A stretch of 64,000 nt of DNA from Tetramitus jugosus (Eukaryota > Protista > Heterolobosea), in NCBI GenBank assembly GCA_937625935.1, contig OW569347.1:434001-498000 (forward strand). The letters run 5' to 3'. Position numbers and translations under genes: made by a program. The first letter of the stretch is position 1; the number at the start of each line of letters is the position of its first letter. The notes beneath the pieces are model-generated. The model was not told where the DNA came from and made no database searches. It saw nothing but the letters and a program-made list of their open reading frames with translations. Of the stretch, positions 5,552 to 50,945 are shown one piece after another.

Positions 5552-5808
5552 ACATGTTTGCAATGTATCTCCTCTTGTATTACAAAAAATATCTGACATC
5601 AACCATGTCGTTTTCGTCATTTTACAAAGTGCTTTTTCAATGATTTGATCGAGCAATGTTAGCGATTGCAAATGCGTCTCTCATCACAGGCCTGATTCTT
5701 CATCTGCCTGCACACTTATCTGCTGTTGATATTTTGTAGAGGGAGAAAAGCGGAATAAATTCCAACTACAAAAGGGATCACATCCATTGGTCACTCTCAC
5801 ACAAACAC

Positions 5809-6301
5809 CTACTCCAAGTCATCATCATCGAACATGTCTCCAAAATCTTTGTGATATTGCAGTGTTAGATACAAACAGATAACAAGAGCAGAAAACAAGT
5901 TGAATGATATGACGTCGTGACTTACTATTGTAGAAATCGGTATGTACTAAATTTCTCTCAATGTCCTTGATGGATGACTCTATTCCATTGTCCATGTAGT
6001 CAGCATCACCATAATCCATCATCATCATGTCAGATCTCCTCCTCTCATCGTCATCATGTTGTTGATGATCTGTTGTTATCATTGTTTGACTTGCATCGTG
6101 ATCATCATTCATCATGCCATTCTTGTTCTGTGAGTGTTCTCCATATTGTTGTTGATCTGCTGCTATTTTTCTTCTCTTGCTGCTCATGGATGCTGACGAT
6201 GACGCATCAGACGTTGTGCGATTGCTGCTGTTTTTGTTGTTTGACTGGGAGTTTGATTGACTGGATTCTCCATTCACTTTTCGCTTTTGATTCTCTCTCA
6301 T
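5809..6301 (-). CDS. COPS9: COP9 signalosome subunit 9 (CSNAP)-like protein with a long N-terminal extension; intron 5847-5925
   Basis: Splicing GTAAGT...CTAAC...AAG gives the C-terminus NLVHTDFYNNFGDMFDDDDLE*, which matches the CSNAP F/D-rich tail. Confidence 0.7.
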
Positions 6302-6512
6302 TGTTGAATTTCAGGTGTTGACGATCGTCTGTCTGAATTGCTACCTCTATTCTTCTTCCGTTTCGTGTGTGCTTGTGATTTTGGTCGGAAAAAAATTACA
6401 TGTTCTTTTGGCGGTCGAACCTGTTTTTCTCCGTCTGGGGAAATGTATGGAATTCCCTTTCCGTGCGTCACCCAAAACATTGTGCCTTCACCACAAACAA
6501 AACCATCTACAA

Positions 6513-7814: not shown

Positions 7815-7834
7815 ACTTAAATTATTGAAACAGT

Positions 7835-10111: not shown

Positions 10112-10381
10112 TGTGATTCATAGGGTGGAAGACAATCGGTCCATTTTATAGTACTTTTGTGTTTTAAGGCCTAATTGTCCCAACAACGATTAGAGTGAAC
10201 CATAGTTAATATTGATGATCTGTTATCTCTGGAGACTTGAAGAATCTTGACATTGTCGGACTAAAAAAAGAATTGTAAGCGACAAGATTTTTTTTCGTGG
10301 CCAAACGAAAACACAAAAAAACGATCCTTTGAGGCAATCATCAACTCTGTACAAAAACACACGAATAGTAGGTGACAAATC

Positions 10382-11761
10382 ATGATTAGCGCTGTATTGA
10401 TTCTTAACGCAAGAGGACACGTTCTCATCTCTAGAGCTTACAGAGATAATGTTGACCCGTATGTGTGCACACATCATGATTACTTTTGGCCCCCAAAAAC
10501 AACAACAACAATTCTCACCTTTTTTTTCATACTTAGACGTTCGATTGCTGGTGCTTTCAGAACTCAAATCATCTCTGCCAAGTTGGCTGATCGTTGTCCA
10601 GTCAAAACCATTGGTTCTGTCTCATTCATGTTTGTCAGATATGAAGAAATGTTTGTCTTGGCTGTAACCAAGCAGAATGCACACGCTGCACTTGTATTTG
10701 AATTTTTGCACAAGTTGATCTTTTTGTTGAAGAGTTATTTCGATGGAAAGTTGACTGAAGAGAGCTTGAAGGAAAACTTTGCTCTTGTTTATGAATTGTT
10801 GGACGAAATTGTTGATTTTGGTTATCCACAGAATTGTGAACCTGCTGTATTGAAACAGATTATTACGTCTGGAGGTATGAAGGAAATCAAGCCTCATGAA
10901 GTCTCCAAGGCATTGAAGGAGATTACAGGTGCTGTCTCATGGCGTAAGGACGGTATCAAGTACCGTAAGAATGAAGTCTTCTTGGATGTGATTGAGAGTG
11001 TAAATATGCTCATGTCACCAAAGGGATCTGTCTTGAGCAGTGATGTGTCCGGAAAGGTTCAAATGAAGTGCTTCTTGAGTGGTATGCCTGAATGTAAGTT
11101 TGGATTGAATGATAAGCTCATGCTTCAAAGTGAGAACAAGACTGCTTCTCGTAAGAGATACAAGGAGATTGATATTGATGATGTGACATTCCATCAATGT
11201 GTCAAGTTGGGTAAATTTGACAGCGATAGAACAATTTCCTTTGTGCCACCTGATGGTGAATTTGAGTTGATGAGATATCGTATTACTGACAACATTGTAC
11301 CACCATTCCGTTTATTGTCTCCAATTGTGAGAGAGGTCAGTAAGACCAGATTGGAAGTCCAAATTACAATCAAGTCCGTGTTCCATTCCCGATTGTTCGG
11401 TAAGAATGTGGTTGTGAAGATTCCAACTCCAAAGAACACTGCCAAGTGTAAGATGCACGTTGGAAGTGGAAAGGCAAAGTACAGAGCTGAGGAGAGTGCT
11501 ATCGTTTGGTCCATTAAGAGATTCCCAGGTGATACTGAATTGAGCTTGAGTGCTGAGGTTGAGCTCATTGCATCCACTCTGGAGCAAAGGAAGTGGAACC
11601 GTCCACCAATCTCCCTTGACTTCCAAGTTCCTATGTTTACTGCATCTGGTTTGCATGTCAGATTCTTGAAGGTCTACGAGAAGAAGTTCCAATATCAGGC
11701 TGTCAAGTGGGTGAGATACATCACTCAAGCTGGTAGCTACGAGAATCGTATCACCCAGTAA
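10382..11761 (+). CDS. AP2M1: AP-2 adaptor complex mu subunit; in-frame intron 10459-10536
   Basis: MISAVLILN..LISRAYRD, YELLDEIVDFGYPQ, SWRKDGIKYRKNEVFLDV, FHQCVKLGKF and KWVRYITQAGSYE. A 78-nt GTATGT...TAG intron explains the inserted peptide. Confidence 0.93.
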   Translation: MISAVLILNARGHVLISRAYRDNVDPYVCTHHDYFWPPKTTTTILTFFFILRRSIAGAFRTQIISAKLADRCPVKTIGSVSFMFVRYEEMFVLAVTKQNAHAALVFEFLHKLIFLLKSYFDGKLTEESLKENFALVYELLDEIVDFGYPQNCEPAVLKQIITSGGMKEIKPHEVSKALKEITGAVSWRKDGIKYRKNEVFLDVIESVNMLMSPKGSVLSSDVSGKVQMKCFLSGMPECKFGLNDKLMLQSENKTASRKRYKEIDIDDVTFHQCVKLGKFDSDRTISFVPPDGEFELMRYRITDNIVPPFRLLSPIVREVSKTRLEVQITIKSVFHSRLFGKNVVVKIPTPKNTAKCKMHVGSGKAKYRAEESAIVWSIKRFPGDTELSLSAEVELIASTLEQRKWNRPPISLDFQVPMFTASGLHVRFLKVYEKKFQYQAVKWVRYITQAGSYENRITQ

Positions 11762-11769
11762 ATGTGTGT

Positions 11770-11878
11770 TATTTGCCACGGATAAACTATTAAGGTGGCG
11801 GTCTACTGTCGATCAAGCCATAATAAAAAAATTATGGTTTCCCGATAAGACACCTTAACGCTCCTACATAATCGGGAT
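11770..11878 (-). ncRNA. Predicted Fanzor omegaRNA: ~88-nt scaffold followed by a flank-derived guide
   Basis: Lies between the Fanzor stop and the element end. Stems TCCCGAT/ATCGGGA (11840-46/11871-77) and CCATAAT/ATTATGG (11818-24/11831-37). Loop sequence 11851-58 is complementary to terminal 11790-97. Confidence 0.7.
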
Positions 11879-13807
11879 TTACATAGCAGCTTGATGGAGT
11901 GAGCCTTGGAGGTGTTCCACCATTTTGATTAATTCTTTTGCGACCTTTTTCTTCCTCTTGAAGGCATCGGGACGTGACTGTCCATCCATTTCTGTTCTCA
12001 GTAGATGGAGCATGTTCTTGGCCGCATTGATGTCTCTGTTGTGAGTCACTAAACATTTAGTGGTTGCACACTGTTTAACTCCTCGGACGACAGAGACATT
12101 CAACGTTCCATTCTTGTCTATTCTCTTATGCTTGACTGGCTTCATGTGAGAATGGCAATGATGACATTTCTGACTTGTCATGAACTCGTCGATCATTTTC
12201 ACTTTGAAGTGCTCATTCAACTTTTTCAATAGCTTTCCTTTTGGTGTTGGAGCATGTCCTTTGTAACAATGACCAAAGCCAGCATTGCCCATCCCAATTA
12301 ACATGCTTCTTCCATTTGCTCTCTTTCGAAAGTCATTCATAACATTGGCAATCGTCTTATCTCTCATTATATAGCTATCCCAATTCAGTCTCTTCACCTT
12401 TGGGGTGCAATAAAAATTCAACAAATCGTCCTCGACTTTCAATACAGAATTGATGTGTTCAAGGAACAGACCACTTGTTGGTACACCGGCCTGTTTGATT
12501 GAGTTTTGGAGTTCATCCAAGTTCTTCTCATTCATTTCGTTCCATTCTGCTTTGTATTTCAACAATCGCTTGGAGTTTTTTGAATGGTGGGACAGATGTC
12601 TATATGTTTTGTTAGACAACTCCCACTTCTTGCCATCTGAATCAACACAACTCACCAACGTAACAATACCCGGGTCAATCCCAACCAAATATTCAGCACC
12701 TTCGTTCATACTTGTTTCTTTCTTTCTCTTCTTTGCTTCTTTCTGGCCCTTGGATTCCTTTGCCTTATTGTTCTTGTGACTGCCAACGAGTTGATGTCTG
12801 AGAACAACAGAGGCCTGAATACCGTCAGTTCTGATTGAGTCGATTTGAATCTTCTTTGTTCCAACATTCAAACACTTGAGATTGTATTTCAATTCAATGG
12901 GTTCAATTACTTGTACATTTCCCTTCTTTTGTCCTCCTGGTTTCTTCTTCTGTTGGAGCATGTCTATCAGGTCCGTTGTACCTATCTCCATGCATCTACA
13001 TTTAAAGTGGGACAAGGGCAACAATGCAAATGATTTAGTTCCATTGCCAATCAGAAACTGTTGAGCATGCCAGTAAAACTTCAGCATGTTATTGGTGTTG
13101 TTGTTCACAAACGATTCATCAATCACTTCGTCGGTTTCAGCACCAACAAGTGTTCGAACCTCTTGGATCAACACAGGAATAGTCTCTATCAACTCTTTTG
13201 GAGGCAGTTTGACAAAATCATAAACTGGAGTGACGAATGTCAACTTTCTGATGATGTATTCTACGACTCTTCTGTATTCAGACCTTGGTTTTGATTGACC
13301 ATTGTGCAATTGATTCATCCTCACTCTCAAATACTTTCTCAGTCTTTGTTCCAATGTGAACTTGAGCATGTTAGAAATATTGACATTGAGAGACTTTGCA
13401 ACGTAATTGATGGATTTGGATAACTTCTCACAAATCTTCCTTAGCTTGATTGTTACGTCATCCATGTTGACTGACCCGTTGATGAGGTTGACATTATCGT
13501 CTCTTGTCTTCGACTTGCGTCCAAACAACACTGAACCGATTCGTTGAATAAATCCTTGATTCAAGAGAGGGATATCACAATTGTTCTCCAAGTGCCTCAA
13601 AACAAATATGTTTATAAATCTTGTGAGTCGAAGAGCAATCCTTGTAATCTCCAGAGCTTGAGTTTGTATGATTGGTAACAGAGTTGGATGATGCAACAAT
13701 AGAGACTTCAGACCGACCTTGACCACGTAATGTGATGAGTATTCATCCTTTTTGACAGTCTCTCTCTTTCTCTTTCTCTTGCCGTCCTTAGGCACGCCTC
13801 GTGGCAT
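11879..13807 (-). CDS. Fanzor (eukaryotic TnpB-family RNA-guided nuclease), Fanzor1-like, 642 aa, intact
   Basis: RuvC-I VGIDPG, rearranged RuvC-II IDEFMTSQKC, Zn finger CHHC...CATTKC, RuvC-III NRDINAAKNM and an N-terminal basic NLS-like KRKRKR. Confidence 0.9.
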   Translation of the reverse strand: MPRGVPKDGKRKRKRETVKKDEYSSHYVVKVGLKSLLLHHPTLLPIIQTQALEITRIALRLTRFINIFVLRHLENNCDIPLLNQGFIQRIGSVLFGRKSKTRDDNVNLINGSVNMDDVTIKLRKICEKLSKSINYVAKSLNVNISNMLKFTLEQRLRKYLRVRMNQLHNGQSKPRSEYRRVVEYIIRKLTFVTPVYDFVKLPPKELIETIPVLIQEVRTLVGAETDEVIDESFVNNNTNNMLKFYWHAQQFLIGNGTKSFALLPLSHFKCRCMEIGTTDLIDMLQQKKKPGGQKKGNVQVIEPIELKYNLKCLNVGTKKIQIDSIRTDGIQASVVLRHQLVGSHKNNKAKESKGQKEAKKRKKETSMNEGAEYLVGIDPGIVTLVSCVDSDGKKWELSNKTYRHLSHHSKNSKRLLKYKAEWNEMNEKNLDELQNSIKQAGVPTSGLFLEHINSVLKVEDDLLNFYCTPKVKRLNWDSYIMRDKTIANVMNDFRKRANGRSMLIGMGNAGFGHCYKGHAPTPKGKLLKKLNEHFKVKMIDEFMTSQKCHHCHSHMKPVKHKRIDKNGTLNVSVVRGVKQCATTKCLVTHNRDINAAKNMLHLLRTEMDGQSRPDAFKRKKKVAKELIKMVEHLQGSLHQAAM

Positions 13808-34357: not shown

Positions 34358-34621
34358 TGTTGTCGTATTGTTATTGGGATCAATCGGAATTCTATGTTTT
34401 TGCTTAGGTCCATGCAGACTCTTTTTCAGCGAAACGAAGCCATAAATAAGAATCAGTGAACCGCTGCACAATGAGATAGCGGGGGTAAAATGTCGGGGGC
34501 CGAAAACGCCCCGGAATCTTGTAATGGAAGATTGATCGGTTCTATTCTTTCTTCCTCAAAAATAAACAACAAAATACAACCGACTCAGCCCTGATTCTGT
34601 CCAGAAAGATCATGCAAATAC

Positions 34622-37594
34622 ATGCACTCAATGAATGACACAAATTCTACCACACCACTGAACTTGTTCTGGACATGGTACCAGAACGAGCGTAAGTACT
34701 CTGTCAGCACTATCTATAACATGGGATTTGACAAAAAGAGATACAAGAACTTACGGTTGAACCATTTGGCACCCCCTGGAGAAACAGGATTGAAAATGAA
34801 TAGCATGACATTTGGTTCTCTCAAATGGTTGATCAAGTTAACGTATGACAAACGTTGCAATGAAGCTGTTAGCAATTCGCTCATTAACATTCTTGATGAC
34901 ACACTAGCACAACACTGCTACTTTAAAGATCCGACTGGATTCAACATTGAGCGAGTAGAATACAAGAGAAAAAGAAAGAGGTCGGATTGTGTGGAGAGAG
35001 AAACAATACAACCAGGAACCGAGGATGAAGTTCATCACTTCAATGAGAATTTATCATCTCAGCAAGCACCACTCGATAATTCCACACAAGCAATACCACT
35101 TTTATCTTCCAATCTTAGTTGCCCAGAGATCAAAGGCATTTTGTCCAAGGCAGATAAAATGATACCAGAGAAGCAATTTGACTGCTCAATTATGGATCTC
35201 CGATGTAGTAACTGTAAGCAGACAATCCTTGAAACCAAACCAGGTCGAAAGCATGACAAAGAACTTTCATTACTGTCAAACAAACAGCGCAACGCCAATT
35301 GTAACCGATTTGTTATATCATTCAAATGGATGTTGATGTTGCTATGTCAAATGTTCACGACAACATTAGAAGCATATTTCAAGCACTATCCGGCAGAGTT
35401 TCTTTCCATTTTAACAAGCTTTATTCATACTACACAGAAGCATCGCAAAATCGTGAATCAAATCCTAAGTGATGGATACAAAAGTTTCACTACTCATCAG
35501 CTTCTGTTTCACAAAGATAGATATTTCATATCTGATCTCACTTACTTCTCTTTCTATCACGCATTGTACCTCAACTGGCTATTCCCATCTAAAACTGAGG
35601 TACAGAATTTGAGAGGAAGTATCAACAAGACAATTTCAGATAACTGGGAAGTGAAAAAGGTTGTTGACGATCAAAACACTCATATCGGTTGGACATGCTC
35701 AATCCGTTCAGTACTGATGCATCTCATGCAAGTACAAATCCGTTACTCGCAGGATATATCCGAACCACCCAATCATATAGAGTTGGTACTCTCAGGAGAC
35801 GGACGCAAAAATGATGGAGGTCAAAATATCATTGCTCTGAAACCAATCGGTTTATCGCAGTTCGATTCTCAGAGTCGCGATTCTGTATTTCCTGTGGTGT
35901 TTTGGAAAGGAGCAGAAAAGATTGCGAGAGAGTGCCTCCAACCCGTAATTCAAATTGTTAAGCAATTATGTAACGATGGAGGATTGTCATACACCATACC
36001 AGTACCACGAGGTTCGTATGCCGCGGCATCGACTGCCTTTTCTTTTATCAAGTTCATTTGGTGCTCTGATCTTGCTTTTCTAGACACAGTATGTGATGGA
36101 GGTCTTTACAGCAGAAGTAACCATCACTTATTCTGTCCATATTGTCAGTGCAAGAAGATAGATTGTGATAAGCACTATTCAAGCAGTGACCCTAGAAAAA
36201 TCACATTCTTTGGCTTGGAAATGCCTGTTAAAATCTGTTCATTGCATTGCAAACAAGCAATAACAAGGAGATTGTTGTTGAATATGGCGTTATCCACAGA
36301 CTCCGTAGGTATCGCAGAGATAAGCAGTAAGATCCACTCTATCTCTGGTCTAGGCAACTTTGATTTCTTGATCAAGGAGAATGCGGGTCCTCGAGATGAT
36401 GATGATGATGAAGGGGCTGAATCTCAGCCTGACAGTGGAAGTGTCAGAGTGCCAAAACTCACTGGAAATCAGTGTGATGCACTGATAAAAAAGGCGGTCA
36501 TACTCTTTTCGTCATTGGATGGAACCACTGACCAAGCACTAGCCGATATATGGCTCCTTTGGTCTTTCATATGTTTTGGATACTTGGAAGCGACCAATGA
36601 TCTCTTACAGAACAAGAGAAATCTGCAAGAAGCAGAAATAATTCTCAAGAGGTTGGACACATTGGTGTACTCAAGGTTTGGAGCCGGAGCACGGATGGGT
36701 TACTACTTCCACATTGTTGTAAAGCATCTACCTTCGTTGTTGTCGTATGGATCGTTACAGCCATATTCTGGTCAAGCTTTGGAGGCACATCACCAAGTGG
36801 GCACCAGAATCCAGGAAAGAGCAGTTTTTAAAGGAACATCTGTTGGCAAAAGCAACACCCCTCATGATGTTCTCCTTCATATATTCCTTCATCCACTACG
36901 TGCTCTTTTCCTATCTGCAAATCACGATGGATGTAATTGGAATCTGCGAAGAAGTAGGAAACGGCGATGTGATGCGATCGATAGATCGATGAGAGCAGAC
37001 AACAACCTAGATACTACATTGTCAAGTGACGGTCTCATGGACTTATTAGGTGCGAACTATGATATTGAGGCCGATGAAACAGAGTCCTCGAATGATAGAG
37101 TGACTGTGGAAGAATTGTCTACAACAGAAGACATACAAGCGTCACCAACATCTTCAACTCAACAAATGGAAAGTTCACTACTCAATCATGCTAGCGAAGA
37201 ACTGGAAATCCTTGCTCAGAAGTTTGATAGACATCTCGAAAAGCGGAAGGCAGTCTTAGATATTGTTTTGAATAGAAATCTGGCATCTTACCGATTCACA
37301 ATACCACAACGTCTTCAATTTGCAAGCCAAGCTCGCCTAGGATCGGTAGAAAACTATTCCAATCCACTTCCCAATCCGGTCCTAAGTGAACGTAGAGTAG
37401 CAGATCATGTAGAGCTTGTGGAACCAGCGATTGCTCTGGAAACTTTTAGTGGAGAATCGATCGTGACTGTCACAAACCGGAGCACTAACATGGCTTTCGC
37501 ACAGCATCCATTGGGTGATCGATATCGATCTGAGATCCTCGGTCAGCACATCTGGTCCACAATCAGGCAGAAGCAGAATGGATCTCATTCTTGA
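34622..37594 (+). CDS. RAG1/Transib-like DDE transposase, 990 aa, intact
   Basis: Motifs in RAG1 order: NBD-like PGRKHDKELSLLSNKQ, SGDG (D1), CSDL (D2), CPYC, SLHC, YFHIVVKH (compare RAG1 YFHKTLAH) and SGQALEAHH (E). Confidence 0.8.
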   Translation: MHSMNDTNSTTPLNLFWTWYQNERKYSVSTIYNMGFDKKRYKNLRLNHLAPPGETGLKMNSMTFGSLKWLIKLTYDKRCNEAVSNSLINILDDTLAQHCYFKDPTGFNIERVEYKRKRKRSDCVERETIQPGTEDEVHHFNENLSSQQAPLDNSTQAIPLLSSNLSCPEIKGILSKADKMIPEKQFDCSIMDLRCSNCKQTILETKPGRKHDKELSLLSNKQRNANCNRFVISFKWMLMLLCQMFTTTLEAYFKHYPAEFLSILTSFIHTTQKHRKIVNQILSDGYKSFTTHQLLFHKDRYFISDLTYFSFYHALYLNWLFPSKTEVQNLRGSINKTISDNWEVKKVVDDQNTHIGWTCSIRSVLMHLMQVQIRYSQDISEPPNHIELVLSGDGRKNDGGQNIIALKPIGLSQFDSQSRDSVFPVVFWKGAEKIARECLQPVIQIVKQLCNDGGLSYTIPVPRGSYAAASTAFSFIKFIWCSDLAFLDTVCDGGLYSRSNHHLFCPYCQCKKIDCDKHYSSSDPRKITFFGLEMPVKICSLHCKQAITRRLLLNMALSTDSVGIAEISSKIHSISGLGNFDFLIKENAGPRDDDDDEGAESQPDSGSVRVPKLTGNQCDALIKKAVILFSSLDGTTDQALADIWLLWSFICFGYLEATNDLLQNKRNLQEAEIILKRLDTLVYSRFGAGARMGYYFHIVVKHLPSLLSYGSLQPYSGQALEAHHQVGTRIQERAVFKGTSVGKSNTPHDVLLHIFLHPLRALFLSANHDGCNWNLRRSRKRRCDAIDRSMRADNNLDTTLSSDGLMDLLGANYDIEADETESSNDRVTVEELSTTEDIQASPTSSTQQMESSLLNHASEELEILAQKFDRHLEKRKAVLDIVLNRNLASYRFTIPQRLQFASQARLGSVENYSNPLPNPVLSERRVADHVELVEPAIALETFSGESIVTVTNRSTNMAFAQHPLGDRYRSEILGQHIWSTIRQKQNGSHS

Positions 37595-37711
37595 GTTTTT
37601 TTTGGCAGATTCATGACAGTAGAAGAAGTTCTATTCTATGTCAAGGCCCTATTGTACATACGGTGCGACATCGAGAAAACTCTAGTGTGTTCGATATTGA
37701 AATTGTTTATT

Positions 37712-38212
37712 TTAGCCTGGAACGAGAAATCTTTGGTCGTTCCACATCATTGTGCAAATCTGGGTATAATTACAGTACACCCGATTGTTCATTGTATTTA
37801 CAATGAACGCAATGTACGTGTAGTAGGCGTGATACATGACTGTACCACGTTTGTAGTACTTTGATGCCCATCTACCTCCCAGATCTGGCATGCAATCGTT
37901 AAAAATAAACCACTCATGCGGCACGTTGTATTCAATTCCATCATAGGTGGCCTTTCTTTGTGTGGTTCGCACACAACATTCCGGTTGCATACGGAAAAAT
38001 TCTCGCAGTATCTCAACGGGGCAGGATGGCAGAACCAAATTTCTTCCATTCTTCAACTGTCGTGGTTGAATTCTACTCCACAATACGTCTCGTGCGTCTG
38101 CACAAAATTCGAGCATCCGATTGGTGATGTAAAAATCTCTGTACGACACATCGATAGTTTCATTTGCAACTCTGGTATCGTGGTCGGAGGGAATGTTGTC
38201 TGCACTGTTCAT
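37712..38212 (-). CDS. Unknown partner protein A of the RAG-like element (166 aa)
   Basis: Clear paralog of 38493-39278, sharing LEFC..R.VLW.R.QPRQ.K.G, MPDLGGRW.SKYYKRG..MYH.YYT.IAF.VNT..NRVY.NYTQ and FLVPG*. Confidence 0.8.
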   Translation of the reverse strand: MNSADNIPSDHDTRVANETIDVSYRDFYITNRMLEFCADARDVLWSRIQPRQLKNGRNLVLPSCPVEILREFFRMQPECCVRTTQRKATYDGIEYNVPHEWFIFNDCMPDLGGRWASKYYKRGTVMYHAYYTYIAFIVNTMNNRVYCNYTQICTMMWNDQRFLVPG

Positions 38213-38492
38213 CTTTTTGGTCGCTATTCATCGTTGTTGTCGTTAAATATCGTTGTATGGTTGGTTCGCTTTTCTTCTTTTTTTAATTTGTTGATGGTTG
38301 ATGGAATCTGAGCAAACTTCTCCCGGAGTAATTTTTTATCTCTCTGTGTTGTCACAACGAGATAATCTGATTCTCCGAGGGAAGATCCCATCAAACAAAA
38401 AAAGATGATGAATCATTGTAAAGTTGTCACTTTAACACAGGACGCAGTTTAAATTTTTTTCACCCACACAACAACAGATAAAAAGCAACAAA

Positions 38493-39278
38493 ATGCCTCG
38501 CACTAACTCTATACAAGTTGGGGTTTCGCCTCAAGAACCTTACGGTCGACCAGAAGAGAATTCATCTACTTGCACCTCCGGTGACCTGCAGGATATCATC
38601 AACCTGCTCTCTAACTCGAGAAACGACCTGCAACAAGAAGTTCGCGAACTTCACACCGAGCTTCAGCTGAAAGAAGAACTAATACTGCGTTTTCAACACG
38701 AGTATGTGAAATTGCAAGAATTAATCAGTCACATGAACGAGGAGAAAGGAAATCTAGATCAATCACGGAATTTACATCCGGAAACACCAGCAACCACACT
38801 GTCCCAGCCCGAAACGTCTCGAATTACACACGATGACCTCACTCCTTTTCGTAGGTACCATAACACACATCGCCTGTTGGAGTTTTGTGGAAACACAAGG
38901 AAAGTCCTGTGGAACCGGATGCAGCCACGTCAAATGAAGACTGGAAACGGACTACTTCTGGGTCAATGTCCAGCACCCTTACTCAAATTCTTCTTCGATC
39001 AACAGCCTTTCTACACTTCGAAGATATCGCGAAGAAAGGTGGTCCGCGATGGCTTGGAGACACACGTATCAATACAATGGTACATCTACAATGAGAAGAT
39101 GCCTGATCTGGGCGGAAGATGGTCTTCAAAATACTACAAACGTGGTAGTGAGATGTATCATTCGTACTATACTCGGATAGCTTTTGGTGTAAACACTGAA
39201 GATAACCGTGTTTATGTCAACTACACGCAGGTGACCACCTTGTTGTGGAATAACAGTTCTTTCCTAGTACCTGGCTGA
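38493..39278 (+). CDS. Unknown partner protein B: N-terminal coiled coil plus conserved ~140-aa domain
   Basis: Paralog of partner A with a heptad-rich segment LQQEVRELHTELQLKEELILRFQHEYVKLQEL. Confidence 0.8.
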   Translation: MPRTNSIQVGVSPQEPYGRPEENSSTCTSGDLQDIINLLSNSRNDLQQEVRELHTELQLKEELILRFQHEYVKLQELISHMNEEKGNLDQSRNLHPETPATTLSQPETSRITHDDLTPFRRYHNTHRLLEFCGNTRKVLWNRMQPRQMKTGNGLLLGQCPAPLLKFFFDQQPFYTSKISRRKVVRDGLETHVSIQWYIYNEKMPDLGGRWSSKYYKRGSEMYHSYYTRIAFGVNTEDNRVYVNYTQVTTLLWNNSSFLVPG

Positions 39279-39361
39279 TTCGATTGATAGTCTAACAATA
39301 CCTACGATGCTGCCATCAAAATTTTCAACGTTAATAGGTTGATTTACTTCTACCTTTCAAT

Positions 39362-42300
39362 TCAATATAAATCATTGTCAATGCCTTTTGCGTTGAATAG
39401 GAATTGAGACAAAATACCTTGAGAATGCTGGTACTGATCACCAGTCACAGGATCATTTGTGATTGCAACTAACTCTGAAGATGTCAAAGGAGATCCATCC
39501 CCATTGTTCGATACACGCACAACTTCTTCACACCCAAATGCCTGCTCTCCCGAATGATGATCAACAAGAGAATTATTATCAGTGTTTCGTTCTCCAATCG
39601 GTGCACCTTGACGCGGATTGGGGTATGTCATTTCATTCCCAAGACGCACTTGTTTCCTTACTTGGAGGCTCTCTGGAACGGTGCAGGTGTAAGTTGTTAT
39701 ATCTCGTTCCAATACAACTGAAAGAACTATGTTAAACTTATGTAGAAACTCATCTTTCTCCTTGCTTTGCGTCTCAAGTTCTTCAATATCGGTGTTCTCT
39801 AGATTGGACTGTGCTTGATTGTGAGTTTGACCGCGACATTGATCACTTTGATCTGTGTCTGGATCAGACAAATCGTCTAAGGTCACTCGAATTGCACCAT
39901 TTTCTTCCTCTTCCTCTGGTTCTAGTTCATAATTGACATCAAAGATTTCCATGAAGGAGTCGGTTGACAAGATGTTCTCCAGGTCAAGTTCACGAACAAT
40001 AAATGGTTCTTTTGCGTCCCGACGTCGCTTACGTGCTCTCCGTAGATTCCAGTTGCAACCATCATAGGAACCTGATAGATGGAGCTGGCGAATAGTGTGA
40101 AGAAATATCTGAAGCATCTTATCACAAGGAACCTTGGTGGTGCTGGATGACGAACCCTTGAAAGATGCTCTTTCCTCGATCATACAGCCATGTTGATGAT
40201 GCGCCTCTAGGGCCTGACCGGAATAAGGCTGAAGGGATCCGTGTTTTGCCAACAGTTCTGGAAGGTGCTTGACGACAATGTGGTAGTAATAGCCCATTCG
40301 GGCATTGGATCCGAAGCGAGAGTGAACAAGGATGTCCATCCGCTTCAGGATAGAGTCCAACTGATTGAGTCCTCTTTTATCCAGCTGTTGGTTCGTCGCC
40401 TCCAAATATCCGAAGCAAACAAAACACCACAACAACCATATGTCAGCCAAAGATTGATCACGAATGTTGGAGATGTTGGAGAACATAGTAGGAGCATTTC
40501 TTATTATTGCATCACATTGGGCCCCAGTTAATCTGGGGACTTCTATCTTTGCATTGTCTGGTTGACTTTGGTCATCGTCCTCAGATCCAGTGTATGAAGT
40601 GACAATTGAATCCATCTTAAATTCAAAATTGCTCAACAATGGTATCGAGCGTATTTTGTTCCTCAGATCTGAGATGCCATCAAAATCGAAACATAGAGCC
40701 ATGTTCAACAATAATCGTCGTGTTATGGCTTGTTTACAATGAAGTGTACAAATCACAACATCGATGGCATTTTGAAGGAAGATAATCTGCCGAGGCCCGT
40801 ATGGTTCAGATTGTTTGTTGCATTCGATCTTGGGACACACACAGTATGGACAGAATAGAGTGGAATTCTCCCTGCTGTACAACCCTCCATCGCATACGGT
40901 GTCCAGGAACGCCAAGTCTGAACACCATATGAAGGTGACAACAACGAACAACATCGCTCCGAGAGGATGAGTGCCATGAGCGACAGGAAGTATGTAAGAG
41001 AGTCCACCAGCCTGCATTACTTCCTTGACAACATTAAATGTTGATTCAAGCAGACCTCTGGCTATCTTCTCAGAGCCTTTCCAGAAAATAGTGGGAAAAA
41101 CTGAGTAGCGAGATTGAGTATCAAATTGAGAGAGTCCAATAGGCTTGACAGCAAAGATATTTTGGCCTCCATGATTGCTCCGTCCATCTCCAGAGAGAAC
41201 GATGCTAATTCTGGATGGAACAGAGCTGTATCTCGCTTGAACCCTCATCATCTCTTTTACAACAAACAAAAGACTACACTTCCACCCAATATGCTCACCA
41301 TCGACATCCCATACCTCTTTAACTTGCCAATTTTCCATCAGATACTTATTCAACTTCGACCTGAGACGCTGAATCTCGGTCTTTGATGGAAAGAGCCAGT
41401 TAAGAAATAGTGAATGATAAAAGCAGAAATAATTGTTATCCGAGATGAAATTTCGATCCTTGTTGAACAGCATCATATGATTGTTGAAGCTACTTGAAGC
41501 ATCTTGAACCATCTGATACACAAACAGTAGATGTTTCTTCGATGATTGAATGAATGCAGTAAGAATCGATACTGAAATCTTCAGGTTGACTCTTGAAGTA
41601 TGCGATCATCACTGTTAAAAAGCTTTGGAACAACAGAGCCAGTTGCCATTTGATTGCGATCACGAATCTTTTGGCATTAATCGACCACTGTTTGTCAGAG
41701 CATTTCGATAGTTCTTTGTCATGTTTTCTTCCGGGCTTTGGAACAAGGGTAGTACCTCCACATTGATCACATAGCATATCCAACGCGGAGCTGTCATATT
41801 CCCTTTCTTGAATCAACCGATTCGCTCTCTCGACAATATCCTTGAGTTCTTGATTTCCTGTCCTGTTGTTTCGTGTTGATAGTGATACTCGATACAGTGA
41901 TTGTTCATACTGCGAATTTTCTGTTTGTGAACCTTCAAGTTGATCATGATCCTGCTCGATTGAACCTCGCTTTCTCTTTCTTTGAATTCTAAAATTCTCT
42001 ACTTGATACCGAGTACAATCTAAATACTCACAATTGTTTGAAAGTGCCTCCTCTAAGTATTCAAGTAGTCGAGATCGAACAGATGGATCGCAGTGGGGGT
42101 CATACAATATTCTTGTCACCCATTTCAACGATCCAAACACGTGCCCATTCATTTTAATTCCTATCTCATCGAGTGGGATCAAACGATTGAATCTAATGTG
42201 CTTATGCTGCTTAAGGTCAAATGCAGCCTTAAATATTGTGCTGACAGAGTACAAGCGTTGGTTGTTGTGTATGATCCAGTAAACAGTGAATTGTGACTCA

Positions 42301-42422
42301 ATAGAAGGAGGAGGATGGATGTGTGGTGTGGTGAGTGAACTTGGTGAGGGTTCAGAGACAGATGGAAGAGTATAGCAACCAAATAGTTGAGGTGCGAATA
42401 GAAAGTGATTCATGTTTGCCAT
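39362..42422 (-). pseudogene. RAG1/Transib-like transposase B with a single +1 frameshift near 41573
   Basis: ORFs 41490-42422 and 39362-41521 together align with protein A. Removing one base restores ...EDFVSILTAFIQSSKKH..., versus EFLSILTSFIHTTQKH in A. All catalytic motifs are retained. Confidence 0.8.
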
Positions 42423-42815
42423 GGTCTTGTCTGCCTGTTTGATCTTCAGTCAACCGACAAAACATGCCCGTAAAAATAAGTTGTTTACAAAGATTCTGTG
42501 CAACTTTGCACAGAGCGATTTTCTCTCCCTATCTCATTGTGTGAGGGAAAAAAATATTCCTGTTCAGGAATACAAGCAAATAATTTACAAAGGAAGCTGT
42601 CTCTGAAGCATTCTGAGTCATGATCCTCAGGTGTTGAGAAGACTTTCACCAAATAGGTTCAGCCTTCGTCTCCCTCTACCACAGATCGATTGGCTGTGAA
42701 GGATAGAGTCCAATTGGGCTCAGCCTGACAAACTGAAGGGACCTCTCGTCTCCGTTTCATGTTGTGCACAAACTGATTTGCCTGCCTTTTTGCCGAAAAG
42801 CTGTCTATTGTCTTG

Positions 42816-43520: not shown

Positions 43521-46500
43521 TTAGCAACCAGCAATCTCCTTTGAACTCGTGAAGAGGCGTCGCATCACCTCCACACATCTCCTCTTTGTATGATCGACAA
43601 ATTGTTGGGACTTCTCCCTTGCCTTCTTCTTCTCTATTCCACTCTTCGTCAGTCCTTTGATCACTTGTTTCAGCGCCCTTGTTTCAATACCCAACATGCC
43701 AAGCATGTATTCCTTGCTAGTTTTCCTCCGCTTATTGACTAGTAATGCACCGTTGCTCCATCGTTGGTTGTCGAACCACATGTCTACTCTTTGGTCCTTG
43801 TGAAGACCCATTTTACTCAGCTTGGTGGAAACTTCCTTCACCAACAGCTTTCTGGCCATTATCGCCACCGGGCATCTAACGAGACAATGTAACACCGTTT
43901 CCTGTTCAAATTTGCATTTGGGACATAGCGTATCCATGTCCACTACTCCATAGAGATGTTGGACAACGGCCTTAGTGTGAATTGTGTGACTTTTCACCTG
44001 AGCCACAAACCATTCCAGTGCACGGTCGACCCTGAAAGGGCATCTCATAAATTTAAAATCTACAGCACCTCCTAAACACTTAGACTGTATCCACCATACC
44101 TTCTCCTCTTTCACCCTATCCCTATGTCGTCGCAAGAAGACTCGCCACAACTGTTCCTTCTCTACGACCTCAAAACTATCATTGTACATTAACCTTGGGG
44201 TAGTGTCGGCTGAATGCTCGTGATTTCCATTGCACTGTAGCATTTCAAGGTCACTTGTCAAGTAATGTATCTGCGAGAACTAATTCCAAAATTTCCATGC
44301 CTTTTGACCAATTCGCTATGCCTGATCCACTTTCCACCCACTGTCAATTGACTCCTCAGCCCTATTCCCACCTTGAACAACCTTTAGATGATGTCATTTG
44401 GCTGAGAGAGTGCCAGATTGCAACTCAGACAGTTGACCTCATTCCCACAAGAAATAGTGAGGTGGTTGGTGTGCATACGGACAGCACACCACTTAAGATA
44501 GCTATGTGCGACGAGCTCAATCCTGTTGTTGGATTGAAATACATTCTCTACCTGGAATGTTTGTAGATGCCTGATCTCCTCAAGCGTATCCAACAACAGT
44601 CTGTGAGCCTCGCCATCATGCTTCCCTTTCAGCATGTTGATGATGAACCAAGCAGTGTTCACCAGCAATGATTCCTCAAATCTACGGAGACCGAAGCCAC
44701 CATTATCGCACGCCACATGCAACAATTCTGAGGGGTACCTCCGCATTGCAACAGAACCCCGTTTGATCAATGCTTTGCCTATATGATTCACTCGGTTGAT
44801 CCACCCTGCCCCCCACTCAGTGAACTCGGAAGCGTAAAGAAACACCGGGTGGATGCATGTGTTGACGATCCTCGCTACTTGTCTGGCAGTTAGTCTCATA
44901 ATGTGGAGTCGCTTGATGACCCTTTCCACCTTGTCTCGGGCTTGCTCTTTCTGTTTGACAGTGCAACCATTTAGGTTCGTGAAGAGTCCTAGTGCCCTGA
45001 AAACTTTCCTACTTCCATTTGCAGCCACAACCACTCCATTGACCATTATATTATGGTCTGATGGTGTTTTTCCATGTTTTCTGACATACAATTCCAGCTT
45101 GGTGGGGTGCATGGTCATCTTTAACTTACCCAAAACCTCGTTCATGCGGTTTGCAGTCATCTCGATGTCATTTCTATCACTTGACATGAGATTACAATCG
45201 TCCACGTACGCAACATTCCAAATGTTTTGAGTCCCTGCCGGGTAACCCTTAGCAAGCCTGGCAGTATACAGTAGCACAGTTTGATGGACTAGAACGTACG
45301 TAGTTGGTGACAACGAATCACCCTGCCTTGTACCCTTACCTATTGGAAAACGTCGCGATAATGTTCCCGTCATCACCCGGGCCCAATTGTTTGTAACCAT
45401 ATCGTGTACCAGTCCGACGATACTACTTGGGAATCCAAAGAACGAGTACACTTCCCTGATGGCGTTGTGTGGGACAGAATCAAAAGCTTTCGCAATATCG
45501 GTCAGCAACAAATACAACTGGCTATCGTTCCTGTTTGCATGGTCGATTACACCCCTCATAATCGATAGCTTCTCTCTGATGTCCCTGAATTTCCTACCTC
45601 CTCCTTGAGTATTTGTGAATATCGAAGCCGCTTCCGCTGCCTTAGACACTCTGGTGTTAAGCAATCTGGTGAACAGCTTAGCCACTGAGCTGAGGAGGCA
45701 GATGGGCCTGTAGTTCGCAATGTCTTGTGCACTCCCTTTCTTGTACGCCGGAATAATCGTACACTCCTTCCACACGGTGGGGAACACCCCACTCACCAGT
45801 ATGTTGTTGAAAAGGTGGGCCAGCACTTCTGCTAGTTCCCAACTGTAATCTCTGCTTTCAGTCACTGGCATTTTGAGCATTTCGTTGTGAATGCCATCAG
45901 GCCCCGGGCATTTCCTATTCCTCAGCCATTTAACTTCATTACGAACTTCTTCCACCGTGATCTCCGTAAATTCCTTCTTAATCATTTCCTCCATTCTGGG
46001 AGCTTCAAGCTCACTAAGATAGCTCATGTCCGCATAGGAATGTGAGAAGGCCGACTCAAAATATTCTGCCGCCTTGCTGCTTACCTTTTCTGGGTCGGCG
46101 TGAGTCATGCCCTCTTCTTCAATGGTGTTAAGCCTGATTCGGTTAGATTTCTTTGCGCTTGCCGTAGAGAAGAACTTACTCGGGTTTACGAACTCTGATG
46201 TTCTTGCAACCCACTCCCACCGTCTGAATCTCTTACATGTGTGTCTAGTCCTCTCTTGATGCAATCTCTGATTGATTATTCCCAGTGTCGACCATACTGA
46301 CTCTCTTCCTATTTCTGTTTGTCCACCATAGTTAGTGAGTACTTTACACAAATGCTCGCCGACAGTACCGCTGACTAGATAATCGAGCACAAGTTTTCTG
46401 CTCTGGATGAGTCTTCTCACACGCCTATTATCCACCCAGCGCTTTGTAGTGCTCTGTTCGCCAAAGAACTCCACAGCCCGAGTAACCAGGACTTTGGTCA

Positions 46501-47350
46501 ACATTTCGCATTGTGTTTGTGGGTCACTCATATCCTCTATCCGTTGCTTAGACAGATCAGACAGCACTTCAGTGGCGTAGTTCGCCCATCTACTGTCCAG
46601 TTTGTTCTTGGGGAAGACCATGCTTGTTCTATCATCCTTGTCACAGCCATCAGTCTTGTGTTCCACTTCCACTGACACCTTCGTTGGTATGTGATCAGTC
46701 AGAGCCCCGTTTCTTGTGAACGCTTCTATATTTCGGACGACACTTAGAGCTGCCTTGTTGGCCCATGTAGAATCAATTCTAGATGACATAGTCCTCTTGA
46801 AGTAGGTGTGGAATTTATGCACTCCTAACACCTGGTTGATATCCTGCATGTTACAACTATACATGGAGCTGATCAGACAATTCGTATTCGGATCTTTGCG
46901 ACCCGATGTTCTGTCCTCCTTAGCGACCACTGCATTATGATCACCTCCAAATAGGACCTTACCAGATGATGCGATACTGCTCATTGTTTCTTTGACGTAG
47001 TTGTAGTGGGGAACATCAATCTTGTGTGGACCGTAATGATTAGCAATGTAAATGGTTTCACTGGCACATTCTACTCTCACCACTTGGAGGCGTTCCCCGT
47101 TGTGGACACTGCCATAACTGGTGACGTTCTTCGTGTTGATAATCGTAGCCAGATATCGACTGGGAAATTCGCATAGGATTGCATAATTCAGTGCTGCCAA
47201 TTGTTTTTGCAACCGCGTCAGTTGCGCCTGGTGTAATATTCTTGTTTCTTGCAGCAAAAGCACATCGATGTCCTCCTGCTCCAACATGTTGAGTATGTCG
47301 ACGGATTTACCAGGCAGTCCGTTGACATTGTACCACATGATTTCTAACAT
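43521..47350 (-). pseudogene. LINE ORF2 (AP endonuclease, reverse transcriptase, C-terminal CCHC); nonsense codon at 44384 and frameshift near 44265
   Basis: WYNVNGL, LLLQET, GGDHN, SRID, TDH; PGPDG, YRPICL, DIAKAFDSV, QGDSLSP, YVDD; CPKC..ETVLHCLVRC. Confidence 0.9.
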
Positions 47351-48448
47351 TGGTTCGGAACTCTCCTCGGCACTCCCGCTTCAGGTGCCCTTCTGCTTCT
47401 TAAAGACGGCAATCTGATCGGAGTGTTGACCAATTGCCTCTTTCTCTGATTTTGTTCATCCAGTTGCGTGGTGGAGCACCTCTTGCCGTTACTCTTCACA
47501 GGAGTGTCTCCGCCATTCACGAGACACATCTCGGCCAGTTCCTCGAAAGCTGACCTGCTTCCTAGTGCACTCGTGCTCTTACTTCTACGTCTTTGAGGGG
47601 AGTGGCCTAGATCATCTAGCATATCGTCTCTTACATCAGGAAGTAAAACTGAGTCCCAATTATCTGTTTCCACTGCTAGCTGCGCAGTGGTTTGTGTTGC
47701 TTCAGCCCCGTCTCTTGACTGGTTCGATGCTCGCTTCTTAGTCGTCCTCTTCTGTATCTTCCTTTGTGGCTCCTCTTGCTGAATAGAAGCATTTACTTTG
47801 AGCTTATTCAACTCCAGTTCCAACTTGTTCATTTTTCTTGTAAGAGACTCGACCATTAGAGTGAGTTGTTTTCTAGTGGTTTCCAATCTTCGGTTAACCA
47901 CCATGATTGGTTCCTCCCTTCTTTCAGTGTACTTGCTCACCTTCACACTGAGACGAGAATCTCCAATCAGTGCTTGCGCGTATGTTGGTGACCTCATTGT
48001 AACAAAGGCCGTATTACTGTTCTTCACCACTTGTTGTACTTTCTCAGTTCCAACAAGTCTCCTCCGTAGTTTTTCCTTCTACACCATGCATAACAAGCTT
48101 CTTGTCATTGTCTAATCCTCTCTTGATGAATGCCTTGGCATTTTTCACACACTTTGTTGTGTTGAAATGCTCCACAAACTCATAGATCTCGTCTTTCTTG
48201 ATGTTGAGCCATGCAATGTACTCATCTTTCTCCCATTTGATCACCTGGACTCTAGTGGCCCAAGGTGAACACCTGCTTGCGACATGCCTCGCAACCTCCA
48301 TGACCGAGCCCTGTTGGTTACTACCCTTAATGACCACTTCACGTTTGTTGACTGTACCTCCTGTGGGAAGTGTAGTCCATACCGCATGCCTGTTTTTGAC
48401 ATACTCGCGCACCCCTTGAGAGGATGGAATGATTTCGTTTGTTGGCAT
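47344..48448 (-). pseudogene. LINE ORF1 (basic, coiled-coil) with a frameshift near 48060
   Basis: Two consecutive ORFs upstream of ORF2, the second overlapping the ORF2 start by 7 nt. Confidence 0.7.
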
Positions 48449-48471
48449 CTGTTTTTTGAGATTCCGTTTTT

Positions 48472-49587
48472 GTTTTTTTTTTTTTTTTTTTTTTAATACA
48501 ACCAATGGTTGCGCTGTTTATTCTGTGTCTCTTCTCTTTACACAAGGTAACTAGTATGATTGTGGCGGCAGAATGCCGCCACTGTTAAATTATTTTCGTT
48601 GCTGATGCTCTGCGAGCATCAGCAACCAGCCATTTTCTTGGAGCTTGTGAAGAGGCGATGCATCACCTCCACACATCTCCTCTTGGTGTTGTCCACAAAC
48701 CGCTTAGCTTTCAGCTTGGCTACCTCCTTCTTGATTCCACTCTTCTTGAGCCCTTTGGTCACTTGCTTAATAGCTTGAGTTTCTACCCCTAACATTCCGA
48801 TCAAATAGTCTTTGCCTGTCTTTCTCTGCTCGTTCATTGTTCGTTTTCCATTGCACCACTGCTGGTTATCAAACCAAATATCAACACATTGCGACTTATG
48901 CAGACCCATAGAGCTTAACCTTTTTGAGACCTCCTTTGAGAGCAAAATCCTGGCCATTCGGGCAACTGGACAGTTCACAAGGCAATGCAAGACCGTCTCT
49001 TGCTCAAAATTGCACTTGGGACACGCCGTGTCCATATCTTCCACCCCGTAGAGATGCTTCACCACAGCTTTTGTGTGAAGTGTTTGGCTTTTGACTTGAG
49101 CAATGAACCATTCAAGCTTCCTATCAACCCTAAAGGGGCATTTCATAAAGGAGAAGTCTGTTGCACCTCCCAAACATGCCTTCTGAATCCACCACAACTT
49201 CTCCCGACCTATCAGATCTCGATACTGCCGAGTGAAAGCATGCCATATCTGCTTTTTTTCAACCACTTCAAAATTGTCCTTGTACATCAGTATTGGTAGG
49301 GTTGCAGCAGAACGATCGTGTGTGCCGTTGCATTGTAGGAGTTCAAGGTCCATGAGAATGTATCCATATCTCTTCGCACTGATGCCAAAGTTACCGTGCG
49401 CTTTGACAAGCTCGCCATGCTTGACCCATTTACCATTTCTTGTCAGCTGCTCCTTCAAGCTGACACCAATCTTAAAAAACTTCTTGGCCACATCGTTTGG
49501 TTGCGACATGGCAAGGTTACAGCTCAAACAATTGACCTCATCTCCATATGAGATAGTCAAATTGTTGTTGTGCATGCGCTCCGCACA
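48472..49587 (-). mobile_element. 5'-truncated LINE copy (ORF2 C-terminal 318 aa, 3' UTR, poly(A))
   Basis: ORF 48619-49575 is a diverged homolog of the adjacent ORF2 tail. T-run at 48473-48494 and the target duplication on both sides. Confidence 0.88.
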
Positions 49588-49640
49588 AGATTCCGTTTTT
49601 TTTGAGAATCACATATCACATATGCTTATCGTTAACAACT

Positions 49641-49711
49641 TCGGTCATGGTATAGGGGTAGCATTCCAGACTGTCACTCTGGCGACCCGGGTTCGATTCC
49701 CGGTGATCGAG
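49641..49711 (+). tRNA. tRNA-Asp (GTC)
   Basis: Acceptor stem TCGGTCA/TGATCGA, anticodon arm CCAGA-CTGTCAC-TCTGG, T arm CCGGG-TTCGATT-CCCGG, discriminator G and a downstream TTTT. Confidence 0.93.
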
Positions 49712-49787
49712 ATCTTTTGCCTGGTTGGCCAGTTTTCTGTTGCCTTGGGTGGAACATGTCAATTCGAACAAAAAGAACAAGTTTGCC

Positions 49788-50945
49788 ATGGTTTCCATCC
49801 GTCTTTTGGTGTTGTCTGATCCGTCTACCAACTTTTACACGGTATTTAAGGACGTTCTGGCCAAGAACAATTCTGAAGAGTGTGAGTTTGTCATGGAACA
49901 GGCATCCATGGCCAACGTATCCCTCAATCACTACAGCGATTCGAGTGGATTGCTTGTTGATCTAAACCCAGAGGAAAGACCATTTCCAAGTACGGACCAG
50001 CACAAGTTTCGAGTGTTCAAACCCAACTTTGTTCTCTTTCGAAACATTGTGTTTGGAGCTGGAGAGGCCGATTACAGGAACATATTGTACGGATTCATGC
50101 ACGCCAACATTCCCTCCCTCAATTCTCTGTTGTCAGTTTTTTGTGCAACACAGAGACCAGTTGTTCATGCTGAGTTGATAAAGATTCAAAAAGAACTCGG
50201 AGAAGATCAATTCCCTCTGATTCGCCAGAATTATTATTCCATGCCATGTCGAATGAACTTTATGCCCAGCTACCCGATTGTGCTCAAGGTGGCCCATGTT
50301 CATGCAGGATTAGGCAAGATCAAGATTGACAATGATGCACAAATGAAAGATGTGAAGAGCATTCTAGAAATTCGCAACAAGGATTATTGCACAGCAGAGA
50401 GTTACATTGCAGGACAGTATGACATTCGTATTCAGAAAATTGGTTCTTTGATCAGAGCATACAGAAGAATCAACTATCATGGATGGAAGGGAAATGTCGG
50501 CACCGCCATCCTTGAAGACATTCCAGTGGAGGACCGATACAAACTTTGGGTGGAAAAAGCGAGTCAGATGTTTGGCGGAATGGATATTCTTGCTGTAGAT
50601 GTCATCGTTGAAGAAGGCACGAACAAGGAATACATTCTAGAAGTGAATGATTGTTCTATTGGATTGGGACCAAATCACGAACAAGAGGACTTGGAGTACA
50701 TGGCAGAGCTGGTTCTTCACAGGGCGGCCAACAAAATTGGAGATGTAACACCTCCAGCCACACAAGTGATCAATCCACCTCTTCCTCTCCAAGAAAACAA
50801 GGACTCCATTGAGAAAAGAACACCCAAGCACTCCCGTATAGGAACTTTATTCTGGAAATCTCTTTCATTATTCGTTCTCCTGCTGGCCCTGTACTTTGCT
50901 TTAGAGCGCGAGAAATTGTGGAATTTGATCGGTTCCAGGTTTTAG
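49788..50945 (+). CDS. Synapsin-like ATP-grasp protein with a C-terminal TM anchor
   Basis: PNFVLFR, IPSLNSL, FPLIRQNYY, PIVLKVAHVHAGLGKIK, YDIRIQKIG, WKGNVG, FGGMDILAV and ILEVN, plus a hydrophobic tail. Confidence 0.85.
   Translation: MVSIRLLVLSDPSTNFYTVFKDVLAKNNSEECEFVMEQASMANVSLNHYSDSSGLLVDLNPEERPFPSTDQHKFRVFKPNFVLFRNIVFGAGEADYRNILYGFMHANIPSLNSLLSVFCATQRPVVHAELIKIQKELGEDQFPLIRQNYYSMPCRMNFMPSYPIVLKVAHVHAGLGKIKIDNDAQMKDVKSILEIRNKDYCTAESYIAGQYDIRIQKIGSLIRAYRRINYHGWKGNVGTAILEDIPVEDRYKLWVEKASQMFGGMDILAVDVIVEEGTNKEYILEVNDCSIGLGPNHEQEDLEYMAELVLHRAANKIGDVTPPATQVINPPLPLQENKDSIEKRTPKHSRIGTLFWKSLSLFVLLLALYFALEREKLWNLIGSRF

Follow-up and report, generated by a model that had tools for sequence, protein, structure and literature searches.

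Two diverged two-gene transposon families with a predicted RAG1/Transib-fold transposase and a conserved non-RAG2 partner gene in Tetramitus jugosus

A 64,000-nucleotide stretch of the genome of the heterolobosean Tetramitus jugosus (GenBank assembly GCA_937625935.1, contig OW569347.1, positions 434,001 to 498,000; hereafter the window) carries at positions 34467-42541 two diverged cut-and-paste transposons, U1 and U2, which lie tail-to-tail and 4 bp apart. Each holds a gene for a transposase of about 1000 residues and a small convergent gene, here called the partner, as an earlier interpretation made from the DNA letters without database searches (the sequence-only reading) had described. On balance we favour the view that U1 and U2 represent two families of an undescribed two-gene cut-and-paste lineage of heterolobosean protists, placed on the RAG1/Transib branch of the CMCT group, and that the partner is a dedicated accessory subunit, which would make it a cofactor occupying the slot of RAG2. 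The element is a mobile transposon; no observation points to a domesticated recombinase.

The transposase is predicted to have a RAG1/Transib fold

The U1 transposase (transposase A) is an intact open reading frame (ORF), while that of U2 (transposase B) is interrupted by one extra base; of the two proteins expected from the sequence-only reading, one is whole and the other is frameshifted. The frameshift is the state of this assembly. For one comparison transposase B was read with an X at that point; all other searches used it in fragments. P0001, a close relative recovered from a different sample, stays in frame across the same point, which indicates that intact copies of the U2 family exist. 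The motifs SGDG, CSDL, CPYC, LHC, YxHIVVKH and SGQALEAHH, all listed earlier as RAG1-like, are present in the window transposases. PGRK, from the same list, is conserved only between the two window copies, and the NBD-like helical stretch that follows it is conserved among homologues.

Pfam and single-sequence PDB searches gave no match for transposase or partner, word-index searches with the window proteins found nothing, and scans of JGI metagenome and IMG/VR contigs yielded no relatives. An exhaustive phmmer search with the transposase returned 69 homologues, the named ones belonging to Naegleria gruberi, N. lovaniensis, Willaertia magna, Pharyngomonas kirbyi and one amoebozoan, Planoprotostelium. 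Among the homologues, the catalytic residues D393 (38/41), D483 (35/35) and E721 (41/42) are conserved, as are the Zn ligands C505 (37/38), C508 (32/35), H697 (46/47) and H702 (47/47). ESM features of the transposase lie nearest to RAG1 and DUF1280, with scores of 0.95-0.96.

Residues 200-790 of transposase A were modelled with AlphaFold (mean predicted local distance difference test, pLDDT, 85.6). Foldseek matched the model to RAG1 (E 2e-13), HzTransib (4e-9), BbRAG1L (5e-9) and the P element (1e-3), and the best 45 matches were to RAG1, HzTransib and BbRAG1L. In VIA comparisons RAG1 and HzTransib scored equally, at Z 23.9 (root-mean-square deviation, rmsd, 3.3-3.5 A over 413-432 residues, 12-14% identity), and Z was much lower with the P element (13) and Hermes (7.9). 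Residues 15-579 of the model superpose on RAG1 395-1007 (6cim). When a profile of the C-terminal half was compared with PDB, only ProtoRAG RAG1L (E 8.5e-5) and RAG1 were matched, HzTransib being absent from the matches at E 10. The large protein is thus predicted to have the RAG1/Transib fold with its D-D-E triad and Zn ligands intact, as the sequence-only reading had expected, and no other fold displaced it. No EnSpm, Chapaev or Lanisha transposase structure stood among the fold-search matches, and we know of no solved structure of any of the three. Because of this, the search points to kinship with RAG1/Transib and gives no ranking against those lineages.

The N-terminal ~120 residues (window 34622-35000) are loosely conserved, beta-rich and then helical, and had no match in Pfam or PDB. 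By eye they resembled KilA-N/Bro-N, a reading that neither database supported. C-terminal additions occur in some homologous transposases, namely a Ulp1/C48 protease (P0007) and a Zn2Cys6 cluster (P0024), at loci L002:1594-4341 and L007:4374-8072.

The partner gene is conserved and linked to the transposase

The model of the partner (pLDDT 86, and 94 over the core) consists of a long helix, a strand, a short helix and long beta-hairpins. It contains no propeller, and with the PDB fold search this rules out a kelch/RAG2 identity; that the partner is not RAG2 had been claimed from the start. No match was found in PDB (best Z 4.7; Foldseek E above 0.06), BFVD or Pfam, and ESM Atlas comparisons reached a TM by query of at most 0.40, with no Pfam or Atlas cluster. 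A likeness to phage capsid proteins in ESM features (score ≤0.81) fell below threshold, and fold searches lent it no support. Partner proteins are 166-290 residues long, and many have basic N-termini resembling nuclear localization signals.

Linkage was examined in the DNA around homologous transposases (loci L001-L013), with the partner matched by held-out profiles. At each of the 11 loci where flanking DNA sufficed, it adjoins the transposase (L001, L003 and L006-L013, and weakly L002, where an upstream candidate has E 0.009); the two loci that lack it, L004 and L005, are truncated. Held-out E-values run from 1e-37 to 8e-5. A profile search for the partner returned three homologues, all beside transposases. 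The prediction that both genes co-occur inside the same ends holds in several unrelated genomes. The convergent, ProtoRAG-like geometry also proposed is found in the window units and in L001, L006, L007, L012 and L013. The layout is not fixed, however, as the partner lies in tandem upstream of the transposase in W. magna (L003) and N. lovaniensis (L008-L011).

The partner gene is under purifying selection, with a ratio of nonsynonymous to synonymous divergence of about 0.26 in Naegleria and proportions of nonsynonymous and synonymous differences between U1 and U2 of 0.32 and 0.80. All testable lineages of the clade retain it, at 15-30% identity, and no copy turned up outside an element. Partner identities rise and fall with transposase identities (Mantel rho 0.37, p 0.03), and supported sister pairs match (transposase and partner identities of 59 and 52%, 48 and 46%, and 78 and 84%). 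In a quick, in-family tree, partner-bearing transposases are dispersed over the main homologue clade; their spread indicates that the pairing is old in this lineage.

The Willaertia element L003 carries additional genes. A gene for a TET/JBP-type dioxygenase (L003:12026-13077; E 2e-5 to Naegleria NgTET) lies inside the terminal inverted repeats (TIRs) of this 8-kb element (5177-13238), with FN3-like fragments between dioxygenase and transposase. L003 is a TET-carrying transposon outside fungi.

Element ends are bipartite and asymmetric

All four ends of U1 and U2 open with CACA-NN-GAGATA, in line with the CACA-led ends first noticed; the two U1 ends agree at 10/12 positions and the U2 ends at 11/12. 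The 5′ ends in the window read CACAATG and the 3′ ends CACAGAG or CACAACG. The partner-side terminus of U1 was fixed independently at 38348, where another copy ends with a different flank. Termini differ between families (CACAAC, CACTAC, CAATAC, CAGTGC), and 5′-CA..TG-3′ termini were present in all 11 copies that could be delimited. TIRs were found in L003, L006 and tentatively L001.

Internal to the terminal block is an inner block of 9-11 bp that lies deeper at the partner-proximal end than at the other. The offset is 10 bp in L009, L008 and U2, 11 bp in L003, and 13 bp in L006 and L012. In five of seven elements the best inner match falls outright at an offset of 10-13 bp, and in U1 it is tied; the summed shuffle p is about 0.001, for a band of 9-13 bp chosen after inspection. 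N. lovaniensis family A (L009) has a 12-bp terminal block, an exact 11-mer inner block, and spacers of 17 and 7. Partner-distal ends also tend to be palindromic (z -0.6 to -3.2, vs. +1.0 to -1.0 at the other ends). These landmarks, the inner-block offset and the palindrome, suggest that tandem and convergent elements differ by inversion of the transposase gene alone.

Mobility and target sites

In N. lovaniensis three copies of 4.9-5.0 kb are 99.8-100% identical where aligned, have unrelated flanks and carry perfect 12-bp TIRs; a second family has two copies that are 98.6% identical. The 950-aa transposase ORF of L011 is intact, and L009 does not translate straight through. These copies show recent mobility of the element in N. 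lovaniensis. None of the 11 delimited copies has a target-site duplication (TSD) of 5 bp, including three young copies at least 99.8% identical, and none has a TA duplication. Two copies had an exact duplication of 2 bp (AT), five had one of 1 bp and four had none, with no fixed length, which fits either near-blunt integration with chance matches or a variable stagger of 0-2 bp.

K612 of U1 (window 36455-36457) aligns with an M in the TLMMAG stretch of BbRAG1L, a column that we take to be the target-contacting residue 848 of RAG1. It comes after the conserved acidic hairpin and holds K in U1 and R in U2, whereas most homologues have Y, M or F. In vertebrate RAG1 residue 848 is R, reportedly a change linked to domestication (PMC9435367). 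Speculatively, the lost TSD would fit an altered target-binding surface.

The cores of U1 and U2 are 63% identical in DNA, 59% in the transposase and 52% in the partner, and synonymous sites are saturated. They are two separate families and not a duplication of one unit. The public-run read comparison spanned 5.9 kb, with the U1 5′ end outside it. One public-run contig stops exactly at 38348, with another flank beyond. In one groundwater contig the left flank meets the right flank with no element between them, and the spacer, TTG-TGAGG, is already in place; the contig comes from a diverged strain with 8-bp indels, so this element-free allele is supporting and not final. Since the spacer is already there, U1 and U2 are probably independent insertions 3-4 bp apart, implying duplications of 0 and 1 bp, and TTGT is probably host DNA rather than a signal joint. 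The same single contig, with the same reservation, led us to reject a single 8-kb composite with a TG duplication and a signal-joint reading of the central junction. Tail-to-tail insertion of two families so close together suggests a hot spot or targeting beside an existing end. The pair sits directly upstream of a PAQR/HlyIII gene.

Table 1. Coordinates of the elements and neighbouring features in the window
Feature	Position	Strand	Description
Element U1	34467-38348	+	3882 bp; two-gene transposon of predicted RAG1/Transib fold; intact transposase
Element U2	38353-42541	-	4189 bp; second family
Spacer TTGT between U1 and U2	38349-38352		4 bp; also present in element-free allele
Transposase A (U1)	34622-37594	+	990 aa, intact ORF; unassigned N-terminal domain, CxxC, NBD-like helices, RNase H core, Zn ligands, acidic C-terminal tail; predicted catalytic residues D393/D483/E721; Zn ligands C505/C508/H697/H702; acidic hairpin about aa 585-605
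Transposase B (U2)	42422->39362	-	about 1020 codons; one extra base at about 41573 splits the frame
Partner gene s1 (U1)	37712-38212	-	166 aa; predicted alpha/beta fold, not beta-propeller
Partner gene s2 (U2)	38493-39278	+	261 aa; N-terminal coiled-coil-like extension and conserved ~150-aa domain (52% identity with s1)
U1 partner-distal terminal block CACAATGAGATA	34467-34478	+	first 13 nt match U2 end
U2 partner-distal terminal block CACAATGAGATA	42530-42541	-	
U1 partner-proximal terminal block CACAGAGAGATA	38337-38348	-	
U2 partner-proximal terminal block CACAACGAGATA	38353-38364	+	inner block at nt 25-35, 10-bp offset vs. other end
U1 partner-proximal inner block CTCCG.G.GAAG.T	38315-38328	-	in register with that of U2
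Imperfect GC-rich palindrome, U1 partner-distal end	34493-34515	+	z -0.9, weak alone; placed as in U2 and N. lovaniensis
Perfect palindrome, U2 partner-distal end	42495-42514		8-bp arms; z -2.4
APE-RT non-LTR retrotransposon	43521-49575	-	ORF1 47344-48030; ORF2 44384-47350 plus 3′ piece
Second 3′ retrotransposon fragment	48619-49575		just upstream of tRNA-Asp
tRNA-Asp	49640-49712		
Synapsin-like ATP-grasp gene	49725-50945		Pfam E 6e-59

Accessory subunit or regulator

The chemistry of RAG and HzTransib is the basis for a possible mechanism with a transposase dimer, nick-hairpin excision and pairing of short and long ends. In the dimer the core would contact the terminal block and the NBD-like helices the inner block, and one short-spacer end would pair with one long-spacer end in a 12/23-like manner. 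Excision would proceed by nick and hairpin, and insertion with almost no stagger. The partner, a small, mostly basic, aromatic-rich beta-sheet protein, may bind the transposase, DNA or both and may promote end pairing or target capture, in analogy and not homology to RAG2; its role is the least certain part of the scheme.

Several observations weigh against this scheme. The evidence tying transposase to partner is genomic. Partner trees are not fully congruent with transposase trees in deep nodes, and between two N. lovaniensis families (L008 and L011) the synonymous divergence is 0.3 for the partner and 1.1 for the transposase, possibly through inter-family recombination or extra constraint on the DNA of the partner gene. 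At the ends, the band used for the inner-block offset was chosen after inspection, and L006 and L012 are related; the U1 inner block is weak (6/9) and that of L001 ambiguous. TSD lengths are mixed (0, 1 and 2) and fit more than one geometry of strand transfer. Finally, derivatives that have lost the transposase keep the partner, which fits a trans-acting regulator too.

Such a regulator, acting outside the transpososome on expression or chromatin of the element family, perhaps as an anti-silencing factor, is the strongest alternative, although we consider it less likely. EnSpm TnpA, MuDR MURB and VANDAL VANC are regulators or anti-silencing factors of this kind. In runs X8 and X4 a U2 derivative is joined from 39698 to 42309, with the transposase lost and the partner kept, and in X8 a U1 derivative retains almost the whole partner gene and continues in U1 sequence from near 35019. 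Transposase-less, partner-keeping forms (window 37723-38348 and 38783-39698) are the deepest-covered in X8 and occur also in the DNA run X4. At 42491, a little inward of the far end, one X8 contig shows a poly-A run and is possibly partner mRNA, but no record gives the library type of X8. Both genes are partly covered by soil metatranscriptome contigs, which are no proof of transcription. The regulator is also favoured by the chromatin-related dioxygenase cargo of the Willaertia copy, by the basic N-termini of many partners, and by changes of layout without loss of linkage. Against it, family-by-family co-divergence suits a physical partner at least as well, and the partner matched no known DNA-binding or chromatin fold. 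We favour the accessory subunit over the regulator.

It is unlikely that the lineage has already been catalogued, as Lanisha or another Repbase CMCT lineage, with the second gene a known feature. Unnamed proteins from Streptophyta, Mucoromycota and Cnidaria make up the three best clusters by ESM features, and Lanisha has a similar host range (moss, and taxa whose tree labels appear to be Rhizophagus and Stylophora) and sits between Transib/RAG and CMC in the published tree (PMC12730594 Data S4; PMC8245031). However, the named homologues among the 69 are heteroloboseans and one amoebozoan, the papers examined describe neither a Lanisha partner nor a Naegleria element of such a kind, and the partner falls in no Pfam or Atlas cluster. 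Searches of papers, Repbase being outside them, gave no description of such elements in Naegleria or its relatives, and the Tao 2022 supplements that were examined do not name them. That the small gene is captured host cargo without a role, like the TET/JBP and FN3-like pieces of L003, is very improbable, given its retention in every testable lineage, its purifying selection and its constant association with the element.

A broader interpretation is offered tentatively. The accessory-subunit model would make these elements a mobile, early-branching RAG relative in Discoba that became two-subunit independently, with a new-fold partner in place of RAG2, 12/23-like pairing of ends one helical turn apart, and near-blunt integration. 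In the papers examined, RAG1/Transib-fold transposases have RAG2L as their only reported partner, and acquiring it is regarded as the founding event toward V(D)J recombination. If the interpretation is true, the elements are a second natural solution to the design of RAG1 plus cofactor, and a two-component make-up and 12/23-like ends had more than one origin or predate RAG2. The elements also add a small protein family that matched no known structure, and their transposase may duplicate little or none of the target on insertion. Intact young copies in a cultured non-pathogenic amoeba, N. lovaniensis, make the need for the partner, the 5-bp stagger and the end asymmetry testable.

Comparison with known systems

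Accessory genes are known in other transposon superfamilies, which tempers the surprise. KolX of Kolobok and TnpA of EnSpm are accessory proteins of two-gene DNA transposons, and in Harbinger a dedicated second protein (Myb/SANT) travels with a DDE transposase. Compared with the window elements, Kolobok and Harbinger have a transposase of a different class, and the partner folds of these systems are unrelated.

The ProtoRAG/RAGL elements (BbeRAGL, PflRAGL-A and Aureococcus AanRAGL) share with the window elements a RAG1-fold transposase (Z 21-24, BbRAG1L being the best profile match), a RAG1-like core with an NBD-like region, and a second gene inside one TIR pair, with the convergent layout of ProtoRAG or the tandem, upstream one of AanRAGL (PMC9435367). 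Both groups also have bipartite asymmetric TIRs. AanRAGL has blocks of 13 and 10 bp and 4/13 spacers (PMC9435367), compared with blocks of 12 and 11 bp and 7/17 spacers in N. lovaniensis family A. In contrast, the partner here is a protein of 166-290 aa with a predicted alpha/beta fold and not a six-bladed kelch propeller plus PHD, Pfam recognises neither a RING nor any other domain at the N-terminus, and RAG1 is matched at only 12-14% structural identity; mean identity within RAG1L plus Transib is about 26% (PMC9435367).

Transib (HzTransib; subgroups I and II) is similar in fold (Z 23.9, rmsd 3.5 A over 413 residues; 6pqx), in its RNase H DDE core with a C2H2 Zn site, and in the CACAATG heptamer found at both window 5′ ends; 12/23-like ends are likewise known from some Transib families (PMC1131882). 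It differs in encoding a single transposase gene where a conserved second gene is found here, and some relatives of the window elements have the termini CAATAC or CAGTGC. Transib makes 5-bp TSDs (PMC1131882), and RAGL likewise (PMC10629977), whereas TSDs here are 0-2 bp. Because none of the 11 copies has this defining duplication, the elements appear to be a separate lineage from Transib and RAGL. For the RAG/Transib-type element proposed at the outset, membership in Transib or RAGL is thus not supported, the low structural identity to RAG1 and Transib also speaking against it.

The CMCT clade (ESTA, Lanisha, Chapaev, Mirage, EnSpm and Plavaka; PMC12730594) shares the CPYC and HIVVKH motifs and the 5′-CA..TG-3′ termini. 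Its TSDs are 2-5 bp, a length reached here by two copies, and the TA duplication of ESTA is missing. No partner family like this one is described for CMCT lineages in the papers examined, Lanisha (Repbase Reports 2020; GenBank MT647524) being compared by name and tree position only. The element works like a RAG/Transib transposon and has the motifs and termini of the CMCT clade. As far as checked, what is new within the RAG1/Transib branch is a conserved non-RAG2 partner whose fold has no match, the occurrence of both RAGL layouts, asymmetric ends offset by one helical turn, and young intact copies.

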